A stretch of DNA of 64,000 nucleotides from Salpingoeca rosetta (GCA_033442325.1 JAWQFM010000002.1:2039044-2103043), one strand, 5' to 3'; counted from the stretch's first letter, positions 6,513 to 18,613 are shown. The notes: a model not told the origin generated them from the letters alone. Numbers and translations are program-made.

Positions 6513-9500
6513 CTAGACCGTGATGTCCTCATCGTCGTAGTGGCGTGCCACGTACTTGCCGTTCCTCATGGCCACCAGCTCCGCCTGTGCGCGCCTGTGC
6601 GCTGCATCCGTTTCCCGCCGCCGCCTCTGGTCGTAGTCGTAAATTTCGTCATGCTCGCCGTCGTGGAAGCGCGCCACCATGCGCCCGTCCGTGTCCACAA
6701 GCACGCCGTCCTTTGTGGTGACATAGTCCTCGGCCTTTTGCATCGGGTCCTCCTCGTCCTCCATCTCGCCCAGGTCGTAGTAGCGCGGCTTGAGGCGGCG
6801 GCGGCGGCGCGGCAGCCCGTCGGTGCCGTTGCTGCTGTCATCGGTCGACGTCTCAGACTCCAGGTCGTCCTCGCTCAGCTTGAGCACGGGAATGACGGGC
6901 ACGGGCGTGTCGTACTCGGCGCCAACGCCGCTGTTGTCCAGCGTGGGCTTGCTCGACAGCGCGTGCTTGTTGCACGAGGCAAACAGCACCACAAACGCAA
7001 TGAGCGCCAGCACGCCAACCACGGCGATGATGATAATCTCGGTGAGGTTGAGCGGAGGGTCGCCGTCCGACGCCGGCGGTGGCGGTGGCGAAATGGGCAG
7101 GTTGTCGCGGATGGCCTGGACAAGCGGAGATCCGTACAGGAAGTCGTCCTGGTCAATGGACCACACCATGGCGCCACCGAGACCCTGCGAGAGCGCAAAC
7201 TCGGCCTTGAGCTTGATGGTGAAGGGCGAGTCGTGGGAGAACCACTGGTCGCCGTAATATGTGTACATGGTCTGCGTGAGGTTGTCGAAGCGGGTGATGA
7301 AGCCCGCCTGCTCAAACTCCAGCACCTCGTAGTAGGCAAGCAGCCCGGCCTCGTCCGTGTATGGGCCGGGGCGAGATGGGCTGGAGGCGGGTGCGCCAAT
7401 GGCGTGGTTGGCCGGCGAGTCGAGGGTCCAGCCACGCGCGTGGGTGCCAAAGCCAAGCAGCAGCTTCTGGCGCGGTGTGCCTTGCTCCAGCCAGAAGGCG
7501 ACGCTGTCCTGCACGTCAATGCCATCCGTGGATGACAGCGCGGTGTGGGCGCCAGTTTGGGGCTGAAGAGAAAACAAGAGGGTGAAAATAGGGGTCGTGA
7601 GCAGTGTGCATGTGTGTGTGTATGTGTGCATGTGATTGTGTGTGCGCGTGTGATTGTGTGTGTGCGCGCGAGCGTGTGTGTGTGTGTGTGTGTGTGTGTG
7701 TGTGTGTGTGTGTGTGTGTGTGTGTGTGTGCGGGGAGGGTAGAGGTGATCATGCGCGCGTTGTTGCAGTTGAAATGAGCACACCTGTGTGCATGTGTGTG
7801 CATTGTTGTGTTGTTGGCAGCAAGTCATGTTCAAGAGCTGTTGTTGGCGCTGTCGTTTCGTGCAATAGTAACGCAACACTAACCTCCCAGTAGCCGTGCA
7901 AGTCGTAGGAGAGGAGGTTGATAAAGTCAATGTACTTGTGCATCTCGCGAATGTGGTAGGCCTGCTCTGCAATGCCCCTGTACGCGGACACGGCCACGGT
8001 GACAATAAGCGCATCCTTCTGTGTGACCTCGCTGTTCACGGCCTGGCGCAGCTCCTGCAGGAACGTGAGGAAGTTGTCGCGGTCCTGTGGGCTGCCGCCG
8101 TTCTGCAGATAGCCCGGGAACTGGTGGTGGTTTGTTCGAGATAGGGGGGGGGAGGGTTGCGATGAATGGTGAGGAGGGAGGGAACAAAGAAGGGCGGAGG
8201 CGGAAACTAAACAGGAGACACGCAGCCACTGGAGCGCGAGCATGCGCCAGCTCACACATTTGAAATTGCCACCCAGTTCCCAAGTCACACATGCACACAC
8301 CTTGCACACACATGCAAGTAACTCACGACATGAAGGCACACATGAACAACACATTGTCAAAGTACAGCACACAACACACGTGCAGCACAGCACAGACGCA
8401 CACACACACACATACACACACACACTCACACTCACACACACACACATACACACACATATACACACACTCTCGCACTCACACTCACTCACACACACACTCA
8501 CACTCACACACACTCACTCACTCCTTACTCACTCCTTACACACCTCCCAGTCGATGTCGACGCCGTCAAAGTCGTGTGTGCGGAGGAACGGGATGAGGGA
8601 GGCGATGAAGGTGGCGCGGCGCTGCTGCGATGCGACCATGGTGGAAAAGCGGTACTGCGTGCGCGAGTCTGCGTTGAAGGTGTAGCCGCCAACGCTCAGG
8701 AGCGTCTTGATGTTGGGGTTGCGCTGACGCACGTGCGTGTGAAAGAGGGCGTACCGGCCGCCATCCACGTCCACGGCTTCGCCAGGCATGATGGTGTAGT
8801 CCGCATCGATGCCCGCAAACGCATAAGCGAGGTGGGTGTACTTGCCGGCGTCAATGTGCTCAATCATGAACGTGTATGGCGCAGGGCGGTGGTACGACCA
8901 CGAAGCGAAGTAGCCAAGCACCACCATGCAGCCAGACTGATCCTCGTCGTCACAGGGAAGGCCTGCATGGGTGCGTGTGTGTGTGCGTGTGTGTGTGTGT
9001 GTGTGTGTGTGTGTGTGTGTGTGTGTGTGTGTGTGTGTGTGTGTGTGTGTTGTGTGTGTGTGTGCGTACGATGTGTTGTGTGTGTGTGCGTACGATGTGT
9101 TGTGTGTGTGCGTGTGGGTGTGCGTGTGTGTGTGGGTGAGCTGACAGATGCGGCAAGTCAAGCAAAGAAAATTGTGCAGTGCGGTTGCTGCTGCTCTTGG
9201 TGTTCATGTGGGTGCATTAAACGTTTGAGGCGTACATATCGCCACACAGAATGGTATTTGATGTCAAGCAGACGCATGCACCTGTGAACTGTGAGCTGCG
9301 TACCTTGTGGGTTGTCTTGGGGAAGAAGGGCAATATCGGCACAGCCCCAAAACTCCTCGGGGAACACATCTCCACACGCGGGCTTGTTCTTGTCAATGCC
9401 GTACTCTGCTGGAAAGCCGAACGACACATACCCGTGAGGCAGACACTCGCCTGCACCCACAAAGTGCCACTGAACAACACACATTGCAACATATACAAAG

Positions 9501-10916
9501 TCTTGTGAGTAACGGCCACCTTCCAAGCACACAAACAAACACACAATCAAACACGCACAAGCAAGCATTTGCACACACCGCACAGAGCACGCACAGGCTC
9601 ATGCTCACCTGAAGCACGCAGTGGCTGCATGTGAGCTGTTCCGGCATGTGAAATGTCGGGTGGTACACGCCGAAACCTGGCTTGACGAAGAAGCGTTCGT
9701 CCCAGCTAAAGTCAATCAGGTTGCCGTCTTCCACGCGTCGCAACAGGTGTTCGTTGAAGCACTCCTGCGACACATTGGTTGCCCCTGTGTATATGTACGT
9801 GTGTGTGTATGTGCGTGCGTGTGTGTGTGTGTGTGTGTGCACGTGCGTGTGTGTGTGTGTGTGTGTGTTGTGTTGTGTATATGTACGTGTATGTGTACGT
9901 GCGTGTGTGTGTGTATGTGTGTGTGCATACATATGTGTACATGTATGTATATATGTGTGTACAGAGACAGACACACACAAGTCAAGAGAGAAACGGGCAA
10001 TCAAAAGCGTGAGTGTGGCTGTGATGATGATGCGAGCAAAGTGACAAAACACACAAACTGAAGCAGACGCGCACACGCGTCGGCCACACCATGGCACACC
10101 GATCGCACAGCCCCCCTCAGACGTACGATCGCAGATGCTGAAGACCACGTGTCCGGGTGGCGTGTCCTCGTCGGTGATGAAGGTCATGTTGAGGGTTTGC
10201 CCCGGCGTGAGGGTGGCAGACACCGTCTCTGGGGTGAGAAAGTCTGGCACACTGCCGGCAACACCGCCGCAGTAGCCGTAGCGGGCAGCGGTGTACGCAC
10301 TGTCGCGTGAGGGCCACACATCGTTTGGCGTGTTGTTCCGCACAACATCTCGTCCGCCCGCATCAAAGCGCCCGTTCCAGCTGAGAAGAAAGGAAAAAAA
10401 AAAAGAAAAAAACAGGGAAGGAGTTGGTGTGAGTTGTGGATGTCATTGGAGGGAGGACTGAGGTGGGACGGGGCGATGGCAAAGGGGGAGGAGAAGAGGG
10501 AGGACGAGGCAAGCAGAACACACACGCGTACACGCACACGCAAGCACGCACACAACACACGCGTACACGCACACGCAAGCACGCACACAACACACGCGTA
10601 CATGCACACGCAAGCACGCACACAACACACGCGTACATGCGCATGCAAGCGCGCACACAACACACGCGTGCACACGACCAGGGAACGAAACAGCAGGCAC
10701 CAAAACGCACTTGAAGTCGAAGTTTCCGGGATCGCTGCGGGTGGTGGGCCATGCAAGATATGGGCCGCCACCACGCGGTGGAAGCGCAGCCTGTGTTGGC
10801 TCAGGTGTACATCCAGCAAGGACTGTCAGCACCAACGCTGCTGCCGCTGCGGACCACCCCATAGAGGAACCTGATGACCAGTGTGGTTGGTGTCGTGACC
10901 AGCCCCTCTTCTGCAT
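6513..10916 (-). CDS. Membrane-anchored GH18 chitinase with N-terminal AA15/LPMO-like domain (exons 10916-10711, 10380-10127, 9784-9609, 9469-9304, 8962-8544, 8120-7884, 7562-6513)
   Basis: GH18 motifs: GYFASWS, YTHLAYAF, KTLLSVGG, intact FDGVDIDWE|FP (DxxDxDxE), SYDLHG, GLGGAMVWSIDQDD. N-terminal domain has GYCGG, GHVVFSIC, SQECFNEHLL, LTCSHCVLQW, EEFWGCADI. TM IIIIAVVGVLALIAFVVLFASC. All six introns are GT-AG with consistent phase. Confidence 0.9.
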
Positions 10917-17400: not shown

Positions 17401-18613
17401 TGTCGTGACCATCAGCATCAGCACCGATTCCAGCACCAACACCGCTTGTTCACGTGACTCACCAAATGCCTGGCTTGCTTGCGCCTTGTTCCTTTCTTGT
17501 AGATTGTGTGGCAGGTCATCTGGCTTGGCGTTTCCCTGATTGCCCCCGCTCTGTTCCTGGTTTTGCTTCGTCTCGGTGTTCGACATACCTTCCCTGCCAA
17601 CGAGGAGGGGGTACGTTTTCAGCACTTGTGTGCGTGTGTGTGTGTGTGTGTGTGTGTGTGTGTGTGTGTGTGTGTGTGTGTGCGTGTGTGTGCGTGGGTG
17701 TGTGTGTGCGTGTGTGTTATCAGGTTTGAGGTGCGGAGTCCCGAGCACATGTCCCACTGCCGAACTCTCTTTCCGTTTTGTTTTCCCTGTTTAACTCACA
17801 GTCCGCTCCACTCCACTCCACCCCACTCCACTCTCTTCCATCCTGCACAAACAGGGGTCCAGTTTCTGGGCAGACATGATTTGTCTCGTGTACATGGTGC
17901 TCTATGTGACGTTCATTTCGCAGCACGTCCGGTCCAAGTTTGAGGCGTGGCTGTTCCACGTGTTTACGCTCATACACGGCATCGCAGTGCTGTTCATCAT
18001 CTCGACGTTCATCCACGCAGCTGCGACGCGACGTGACCACGTTGTCGACCTCACCCTCTACCTCTTCGCCGTGTACCAGGGCGCGCCCATCCTGCTGTCC
18101 CTGATTGTGAGCCCGCGCTCGTGCGGGTTCCTTGTCAAGTACTTTGTGCCCTACATGATCTTCCTGCCGACGCACACCATGACCTTCTGGACGTATGCGC
18201 TCACGCGCACGTTTGATCTCACGTGGGGTAACCGCCCCACAACCCACAAAGTCCCCAAGAACGAGCGCAACCTCATTGTGGAGAAGCTCAAGAGCAGCGC
18301 CGTGTCGCTGATTGGCTTTGTGGCCTGCATCAACCTCCTCATCGCCGTGGTGCTGCTTCAAATTGCCGTGTCCGGGCGAACGCTGTGGATCATCTGGACC
18401 CTCGTGTCCCTCATGATCTTCTCCGGCGTGCAGATGGCGCTGTCGTTCTGCTTTGCGCTGGAGTACCATCTCATCCGCCGCGTCCGCCGCTGGATCCGCA
18501 TTGGCCGCCTCAACCTCGCCCGCCACAGGCGCAAGAACAAGCGCAAGCTCCCCGATTCAGGCCAGAGCCAGGCACAACTCCTCGAGTGGGACAACACTGG
18601 TGTACCAAAGTAA
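14440..18613 (+). CDS. CHS: Chitin synthase (GT2; exons 14440-17154, 17503-17610, 17855-18613)
   Basis: Motifs VVPCYNE, IMDG, KRDNRRKHN, TDCGT, QGFEY, VIPGPCGLF, LAEDRFL, QRRRW, and C-terminal DLTWGNRP among multiple TM helices. Phase-0 GT-AG introns. Confidence 0.93.

Follow-up and report, generated by a model that had tools for sequence, protein, structure and literature searches.

Several polysaccharides are made by a processive synthase of glycosyltransferase family 2 (GT2) that is accompanied by a hydrolase of its own product, as in the cellulose systems BcsA/BcsZ and CESA/KORRIGAN, where KORRIGAN is a single-pass membrane GH9 enzyme with its catalytic domain outside. The yeast Chs synthases and the chitinase Cts1 provide a further analogy of a synthase working with a hydrolase. 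Another comes from the Entamoeba cyst wall (PMC8552601), and fungi have a conserved divergent pair composed of two chitin synthase genes (PMC2871058). Here we describe a locus of the choanoflagellate Salpingoeca rosetta, contained in a 64,000-nucleotide stretch of DNA (contig 2, 2039044-2103043; hereafter the window), in which the genes for a predicted membrane chitinase (PTSG_01413, minus strand) and a predicted chitin synthase (PTSG_01414, plus strand) lie head-to-head. On balance, the two genes probably constitute a co-regulated pair for chitin synthesis and remodelling that works in solitary S. rosetta cells.

A polysaccharide synthase combined with a dedicated hydrolase is an already known design, and the locus shares features with each of the described systems. 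As in the cellulose pairs, a GT2 synthase is matched with a hydrolase of its predicted product, and the chitinase, like KORRIGAN, would be single-pass with its catalytic domain outside; the polymer differs, a GH18 enzyme takes the place of GH8 or GH9, the genes are divergent and form no operon, and the pairing in S. rosetta is one of gene order and expression. The division-1 synthases of fungi and oomycetes (Saccharomyces cerevisiae Chs1, 7XS6; Candida Chs2, 7STL; Phytophthora sojae Chs1, 7WJM) have in common with PTSG_01414 the QxFEY, LAEDR, QRRRW and (S/T)WG motifs, a transmembrane domain found only at the C-terminus and a match to Chitin_synth_1, and in these organisms synthases and chitinases (yeast Cts1) likewise coordinate the synthesis and hydrolysis of one polymer. 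Identity to these synthases is moderate, however, the low-complexity N-terminus of ~540 amino acids (aa) in PTSG_01414 is unique, and the chitinase partner of S. rosetta differs in being membrane-anchored and in carrying a domain that resembles lytic polysaccharide monooxygenases (LPMOs). The divergent fungal pair is alike in keeping head-to-head chitin-pathway genes together, but the partner is a second synthase and not a hydrolase.

Expression of the divergent pair

RNA-seq data in the supplement of Fairclough 2013, which cover eight samples (three thecate-enriched cultures, one swimmer, one chain-colony and three rosette), show that both transcripts are abundant in swimming and thecate cells and almost absent from the chain and rosette forms of colony. 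Across the eight samples the chitinase reached 27, 46, 58, 78, 3.3, 7.3, 8.3 and 11.7 fragments per kilobase of transcript per million mapped reads (FPKM) and the synthase 32, 70, 99, 128, 0.19, 0.12, 4.7 and 11.3 FPKM, with solitary/colony ratios of 6.9-fold and 20-fold, respectively. Synthase reads fall from ~2000 in swimmers to 2-3 in chains and in one rosette sample, and antisense counts are near zero. The co-regulation proposed in a preliminary description of this DNA is borne out by these profiles, which are tightly correlated (Spearman 0.976; Pearson 0.997 on raw and 0.965 on log values) and place both genes in a single expression cluster of 290 genes.

Among the entries given in the differential list sorted by identifier, PTSG_01407, PTSG_01413, PTSG_01414 and PTSG_01423 follow one another in succession, and the neighbours PTSG_01408-01412 and PTSG_01415-01422 are not among the differential genes listed; the flanking genes are therefore outside the pattern, which argues against a broad regional effect. 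Co-regulation is supported by these independent published data, and the biochemical and cell-biological parts of the proposal are offered as hypotheses. Chitin is not mentioned in the text of Fairclough 2013.

Two further genes of the same pathway can be set beside the pair. The polysaccharide deacetylase PTSG_09302 has a similar profile, high in solitary cells and low in colonies, with its top value in swimmers (235 FPKM). A second synthase, PTSG_01542, is not among the differential genes listed.

Gene models

Gene models rebuilt from the sequence match the annotated proteins and agree with the head-to-head arrangement first described for this locus (Table 1). The spliced model of PTSG_01413 gives the same reading as XP_004997388.1, and the lengths of both coding sequences, 2454 nt for the chitinase and 3582 nt for the synthase, equal those given in the Fairclough 2013 supplement. 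Within the ranges of exon boundaries tried for PTSG_01414, no GT-AG combination other than the three-exon model of Table 1 yields the annotated protein exactly. The synthase start given earlier at 14440 is where exon 1 begins, and the chitinase start given earlier at 10916 is in frame, 54 nt ahead of the ATG annotated at 10862; the orthologues begin close to the signal peptide, which makes the shorter form the likelier one. The introns of PTSG_01413 contain many CA/TG microsatellites. The public record has the same gene order, with a rotamase, a DUF3574 protein, an 817-aa protein with a weak LPMO_10 and a GH18 match (minus strand), the chitin synthase (plus strand) and a DnaJ/TPR protein.

With two synthase-like and three GH18 loci among ~11,700 genes in S. 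rosetta, ~0.001 adjacent pairs would be expected by chance, a figure calculated post hoc. Neither gene occurs in two supplement files of the S. rosetta survey of horizontal gene transfer, and neither locus tag is mentioned in the searchable main texts of the literature.

Table 1. Features of the S. rosetta locus, in positions of the window, followed by synthase loci of other lineages with a chitinase or deacetylase neighbour.
Feature	Position	Strand	Description
PTSG_01413, predicted chitinase	6513-10862	-	7 exons, 817 aa: signal peptide, AA15-like LPMO domain, GH18, transmembrane helix, cytosolic tail
PTSG_01413 exons	10862-10711, 10380-10127, 9784-9609, 9469-9304, 8962-8544, 8120-7884, 7562-6513	-	every intron GT-AG
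AA15-like LPMO domain	9317-10766	-	residues ~33-245, across exons 1-4; first copper-site His replaced by Gly33
GH18 catalytic domain	7146-8921	-	residues 264-607, exons 5-7; Pfam Glyco_hydro_18
Predicted transmembrane helix and cytosolic tail	6516-7037	-	helix 7037-6981 (residues 644-662); 155-aa tail
Divergent spacer	10863-14439		3577 bp from coding sequence to coding sequence, no detectable gene
Spacer microsatellites	11285-11363, 12162-12222, 13783-13960, 14340-14426		(CA)n, (TG)n, (TC)89 and (TC)44, in that order
Assembly gap	14134-14339		206 N; (TC)n array at right edge, (TC)89 array ~170 bp to left
PTSG_01414, predicted chitin synthase	14440-18613	+	3 exons, 1193 aa
PTSG_01414 exons	14440-17154, 17503-17610, 17855-18613	+	exact rebuild of annotated protein
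Low-complexity N-terminal region	14440-16060	+	~540 aa, Q-, S- and acidic-rich, no Pfam domain
GT2/chitin-synthase catalytic core	16102-17079	+	TDCGT, QGFEYE, LAEDR, QRRRW
C-terminal membrane domain	17122-18613	+	residues 895-1138, at least 6 predicted transmembrane helices, TWGNR
L010, Sphaeroforma arctica	3197-13133		GH18 (-)/chitin synthase (+), intronless two-domain GH18, head-to-head, 4.3 kb apart, nothing between
L009, Sphaeroforma arctica	10001-23441		synthase-GH19-synthase; GH19 chitinase head-to-head with one synthase
L012, virus-like contig of 167 kb	7978-12382		CBM2-collagen-GH18 gene 68 bp upstream of synthase
L013, virus-like contig of 179 kb	5393-14944		GH18 (-)/chitin synthase (+) 80 bp apart, among GlmU-like, GFAT and AGM1 genes
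L015, IMG/VR giant-virus contig (with L016, 2 of 10)	4128-7995		GH18 head-to-head with synthase
L016, IMG/VR giant-virus contig (with L015, 2 of 10)	3498-7941		GH18 head-to-head with synthase
L003, dense intron-free contig	344-7046		polysaccharide deacetylase directly upstream of synthase
L004, dense intron-free contig	615-8733		polysaccharide deacetylase directly upstream of synthase
L017, dense intron-free contig	3572-7121		polysaccharide deacetylase directly upstream of synthase

The chitin synthase

By its domains and motifs, PTSG_01414 is a complete predicted chitin synthase of the division-1 type (fungal class I-III-like). Pfam matches start at residue 557, with Chitin_synth_1 (PF01644) at 36 bits against a cut-off of 25 and Chitin_synth_2 (PF03142) at 32.6 bits against 27. 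The EDR and QRRRW motifs, which had been described as intact, are found at 16918-16926 and 17038-17052, and TWGNR at 18221-18235. In an alignment with P. sojae Chs1 (7WJM; E 5.5e-20), QGFEYE (residue 762), LAEDR (residue 825), QRRRW (residue 867) and TWGNR (residue 1064) are in register, the solved yeast and Candida synthases align with the same motifs in register, and the motifs are invariant among 20 homologues. Hydropathy prediction gives six peaks in the C-terminal membrane domain, which are conserved in the orthologues, and the N-terminal ~540 aa are probably disordered.

PTSG_01414 is the sole Chitin_synth_1 locus of the S. rosetta genome. The second synthase, PTSG_01542, lies 620 kb away (contig 2, 2676316-2676975) and is of the metazoan type with a SAM domain, as has been reported previously (PMC3942024). 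A quick tree places the choanoflagellate synthases on a separate long branch, whose position among the ichthyosporean and viral synthases it leaves unresolved.

The membrane chitinase and its LPMO-like domain

The preliminary description had both products bound to membranes, and prediction concurs, with a signal peptide and one transmembrane helix (hydropathy peak 3.45) in the chitinase and at least six transmembrane helices in the synthase. PTSG_01413 is predicted to be a type I membrane protein with an ectodomain in which an AA15-like LPMO fold is joined to an intact GH18 domain. The Glyco_hydro_18 match (PF00704) reaches 280 bits (E 4.3e-83). The catalytic DxxDxDxE motif is intact, as stated earlier, and reads DGVDIDWE (8567-8544, minus strand; residues 382-389), and the remaining GH18 motifs are complete (SVGG at residue 339, YDLHG at 461 and MVWSIDQDD at 600). 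The animal GH18 proteins CHIT1, AMCase and OVGP1 belong to the same subfamily type, the DxxDxDxE motif being intact as in the active chitinases, and the NCBI product name of PTSG_01413 is 'oviductal secretory glycoprotein'; the S. rosetta protein differs from them in having no CBM14 and in possessing an LPMO-like module, a transmembrane helix and a conserved cytosolic tail.

The LPMO-like domain, which the preliminary description overlooked, was identified in three species (S. rosetta, Hartaetosiga balthica and Choanoeca flexa), with Pfam LPMO_10 (PF03067) scores of 29-38 bits (29.3 bits in S. rosetta) against a cut-off of 23. The sole sequence match in the PDB is the AA15 enzyme of Thermobia domestica (TdAA15A, 5MSZ), with an E-value of 1.2e-5 when the single sequence was used and of 2.4e-13 with a profile of the three species. 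The same structure is the top Foldseek match (E 2.9e-7), followed by other LPMO families, for an AlphaFold model of low confidence (mean predicted local distance difference test score, 55), and an ESM Atlas model compared with LPMO_10 clusters gave TM-scores of 0.66-0.80. TdAA15A is thus the best match in both sequence and fold, with the conserved cysteines and the C-x-x-C-V-L-Q-W strand in alignment; the S. rosetta domain differs in having Gly33 in place of His1 and in its fusion to a GH18 domain and a membrane anchor.

The copper histidine brace appears to be lost. His1 is replaced by glycine in all three choanoflagellates, and Gly33 of S. rosetta lies ~10 residues past the likely signal-peptide cut, inside the mature chain and not at its N-terminus. 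The position was placed from the H. balthica Pfam match, which begins at profile position 4 (residue 37), so that position 1, which we take to be the N-terminal His of the LPMO_10 profile, corresponds to Gly34. The second brace histidine is presumably His91 of TdAA15A, the residue three before the GFFEFRLC strand; in the 5MSZ profile alignment, and with a low-confidence model, the column aligned with it holds Thr124, Gln or Val, and an invariant His128 follows four residues on. The domain is classed as LPMO-like and not as an LPMO because His1 of the defining copper site is missing, and it is probably a chitin-binding pseudo-enzyme or binding module and not an oxidase. The LPMO_10-type family was itself first classed as a carbohydrate-binding module.

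The whole domain layout of the chitinase, missing histidine included, is kept in H. balthica and C. flexa. Word searches for relatives, using either the LPMO-like domain alone or the domain within the full-length protein, returned only the protein itself. Six-frame searches of the genome for LPMO_10 and Polysacc_deac_1 gave no match and are uninformative, because the LPMO-like domain exists and was nonetheless missed owing to exon splitting; a six-frame search of the S. rosetta genome for GH19, run without a positive control, also gave no match.

The cytosolic tail (6516-6980) has a juxtamembrane GVGxEYDTPxP motif and repeats of the forms DGRM(V/I)AR.F.D and DG(K/R)(Y/F)VARHYDD, those of S. 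rosetta being of the types DGRMVARFHD and DGKYVARHYDD. The tail was aligned with those of Hartaetosiga, Choanoeca and a marine relative, and the motifs are kept in S. rosetta, in Hartaetosiga and in the marine relative, which is known from a metagenome and is 66% identical. They may represent a sorting or docking signal. Contact prediction between residues 545-1193 of the synthase and 620-817 of the chitinase gave a score of 0.02, which is uninformative either way.

The domain content bears on what the pair would make. One alternative is that no structural wall is involved and that the pair makes short chito-oligosaccharides or a thin coat rich in N-acetylglucosamine (GlcNAc), the synthase, hydrolase and deacetylase setting the length and acetylation of the oligomers, in the manner of Nod factors, for signalling, adhesion or settlement. 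Such a role would fit the peak of expression in swimmers, cells that lack a theca, as well as the co-expressed deacetylase and the lack of any description of chitin fibres in choanoflagellates (PMC6789865). Nevertheless, PTSG_01414 has a full channel domain of the processive type together with TWGNR and aligns with the fibre-forming synthases of fungi and oomycetes, the LPMO-like module suggests binding to a crystalline polymer, and direct evidence for oligomers is lacking, and we regard this alternative as unlikely.

The spacer and the assembly gap

The intergenic region between the two genes had been put at ~3.5 kb and far above the other divergent spacers; at 3577 bp it does exceed them, the genes of the neighbouring divergent pair being separated by 118 bp and the other genes nearby by 940, 737 and 904 bp. 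It had also been said to hold no convincing gene, and a search for a hidden one agrees. There is no annotated gene and no open reading frame (ORF) with a Pfam match at E <= 0.01, and the longest ORF (12290-13549, 419 aa) and six others are all low-complexity translations. No Rfam family reaches its gathering score in the spacer, and a tRNA search found none. A match to EBv-sisRNA-1, which reaches 22.6 bits where the gathering score is 58, lies beside and partly over a CA repeat and was dismissed as chance. A transposon origin of the spacer was also rejected, the only matches to it elsewhere in the genome being of the microsatellite type.

The start codons are 3577 bp apart, compared with the criterion for bidirectional promoters of start sites less than ~1 kb apart, and co-expression over this distance is more readily attributed to common regulators, or to a regulatory region that serves both genes, than to a classic bidirectional promoter of <1 kb. 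The synthase ATG directly follows a long (TC)n pyrimidine tract that ends in gatag (14340-14439, plus strand) and resembles a 3' splice site. This suggests an intron in the 5' untranslated region and an unannotated non-coding upstream exon of the synthase, in or beyond the assembly gap, so that transcription may begin further upstream.

The gap is non-coding and ends 100 bp before the synthase ATG, leaving the reading frames unaffected, and an identical gap is present in GCA_000188695.1. The length of the spacer and the continuity of the synthase with the spacer and chitinase rest on the scaffold across it. That the adjacency is an artefact, the gap (14134-14339) joining two unrelated contigs, is very improbable. 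Such a join would separate the synthase from the remainder of the locus, at a gap left unfilled in both assemblies, but the (TC)n at the right edge and the (TC)89 array to the left are what would be expected of a collapsed microsatellite within one locus. In addition, the gap was given an estimated size, implying that read pairs span it, and true linkage is consistent with both the tight co-expression and the like arrangement seen in other taxa.

Recurrent pairing in other lineages

Homologous synthase loci were surveyed as far as they could be fetched, and were thus chosen by availability, with 16 readable loci besides that of S. rosetta. A chitinase is the adjacent gene in six of the 16, head-to-head in all but one of the six, and a deacetylase is adjacent in three more (Table 1). 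The giant-virus and chlorovirus-like clusters are alike in having a GH18 gene adjacent to a synthase of the same family, often divergently; they differ in that the viral spacers are <120 bp, the viral genes are intronless and the chitinases are non-orthologous (26% identity). The neighbouring chitinases as a whole have 21-26% identity to that of S. rosetta and other architectures, one of them belonging to another family, and are accordingly non-orthologous. The GH18 neighbour in S. arctica was considered as an orthologue and rejected, as it is 21% identical, has another, two-domain construction and lacks the LPMO-like domain. In the quick tree the three synthases of S. arctica group together in a single clade confined to that species. 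As the chitinases are non-orthologous and the synthase clades separate, the pairing arose several times, and such recurrence supports functional coupling better than conserved synteny would.

Several of the surveyed loci have further features. One virus-like contig (L013) carries a near-complete cluster leading from UDP-GlcNAc to chitin. The three synthases with a deacetylase neighbour (L003, L004 and L017) are ~1350 aa long with a duplicated Chitin_synth_1 match; by E-value they are the closest matches to PTSG_01414 outside the choanoflagellates (39-40% identity), and in the quick tree they fall in a viral clade. Two of these contigs (L003 and L004) have a gene with a faint match to UDP-glucose dehydrogenase, and L004 also has a second, shorter chitin synthase.

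Synthase orthologues are found in Microstomoeca, Hartaetosiga gracilis and Salpingoeca infusionum and chitinase orthologues in H. balthica and C. flexa. These chitinase orthologues are on no genomic record, and a metagenome scan for linkage of the orthologues found nothing. The contig of a 91%-identical relative includes just 467 bp upstream of the synthase, and contigs bearing a relative of the chitinase are at most 2.7 kb.

The recurrence is also relevant to a second alternative, in which the neighbours are co-expressed and share no polymer, the chitinase acting on foreign chitin or GlcNAc glycans (food, detritus or parasites, perhaps in the food vacuole or at the surface) and the synthase acting separately. 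Adjacent genes often share expression without sharing function, animal GH18 enzymes serve in digestion and defence, and the NCBI name of PTSG_01413 is taken from an animal GH18 protein; further, choanoflagellates are not known to contain chitin of their own (PMC6789865). Colonies also feed, however, yet the chitinase is 7-fold lower in them, and S. rosetta eats bacteria. The flanking genes are not co-regulated, and on at least four occasions unrelated chitinases have come to adjoin synthases of this family, a recurrence that would be puzzling if the two enzymes had no substrate in common. We regard separate substrates as improbable.

Other genes of the window

PTSG_01412 (4575-5573, plus strand) is intronless, has DUF3574 as its sole domain and is arranged head-to-head with the rotamase gene PTSG_01411 at a distance of 118 bp. 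DUF3574 is a mainly bacterial family, and a horizontal acquisition of PTSG_01412 is possible.

A model for the pair

In the reading that we favour, of a co-regulated pair for chitin synthesis and remodelling, the synthase would extrude chitin across the plasma membrane in solitary cells, and the chitinase would be tethered in the same membrane and kept on the polymer by its LPMO-like binding module. By cutting or editing nascent or deposited chains, the chitinase could allow the material to be laid down, shaped or released. The material could be the theca, an attachment structure (stalk or settlement pad) or a cell coat, and the co-expressed deacetylase PTSG_09302 may turn part of the chitin into chitosan. 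Swimmers, in which expression peaks, may be cells about to settle. Choanoflagellates positive for wheat germ agglutinin (WGA) have been reported from field work (PMC9849195).

Several observations weigh against this reading. Chitin synthase genes occur in choanoflagellates, yet no structure made of chitin is known from them, the theca having been suggested as a candidate (PMC6789865), and expression of the pair peaks in swimmers, the cells without a theca. The co-expression comes from eight samples of a single study, and the thecate samples are enriched cultures and not pure cell types. The 3.6-kb spacer far exceeds a typical bidirectional promoter and includes an unread gap. The orthologues are known from transcriptomes or from contigs of at most 6 kb, which are too short for linkage, and the roles of both enzymes, their product and their localisation are predicted from the sequence.

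A bolder version of the favoured reading is that solitary cells deposit chitin or chitosan by means of a stage-switched toolkit (synthase, tethered pseudo-LPMO chitinase and deacetylase), and that the head-to-head pair evolved convergently in choanoflagellates, ichthyosporeans and giant viruses, since synthases of this family depend on a partner hydrolase to extrude chitin. We put this forward tentatively, as a possibility that is rather doubtful in its full extent.

Implications

As far as we found, two aspects of the locus are apparently undescribed, the fusion of a pseudo-LPMO to a membrane chitinase and the convergent pairing of chitinase and synthase across holozoans and giant viruses. 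An LPMO fold without its copper site, fused to a chitinase, would be an example of an oxidase turned into a binding module. Choanoflagellates are the sister group of animals, and the locus makes it testable whether they build with chitin. CRISPR and transfection work in S. rosetta, and two or three named genes with a clear pattern of being on in solitary cells and off in colonies provide a concrete hypothesis open to knockout. If chitin is present in the theca or settlement apparatus, a polymer of the fungal wall type would be tied to cell-type switching in a relative of animals. The repeated, independent placement of a chitinase beside this synthase family suggests that the hydrolase is a functional requirement, comparable to KORRIGAN and BcsZ for cellulose.

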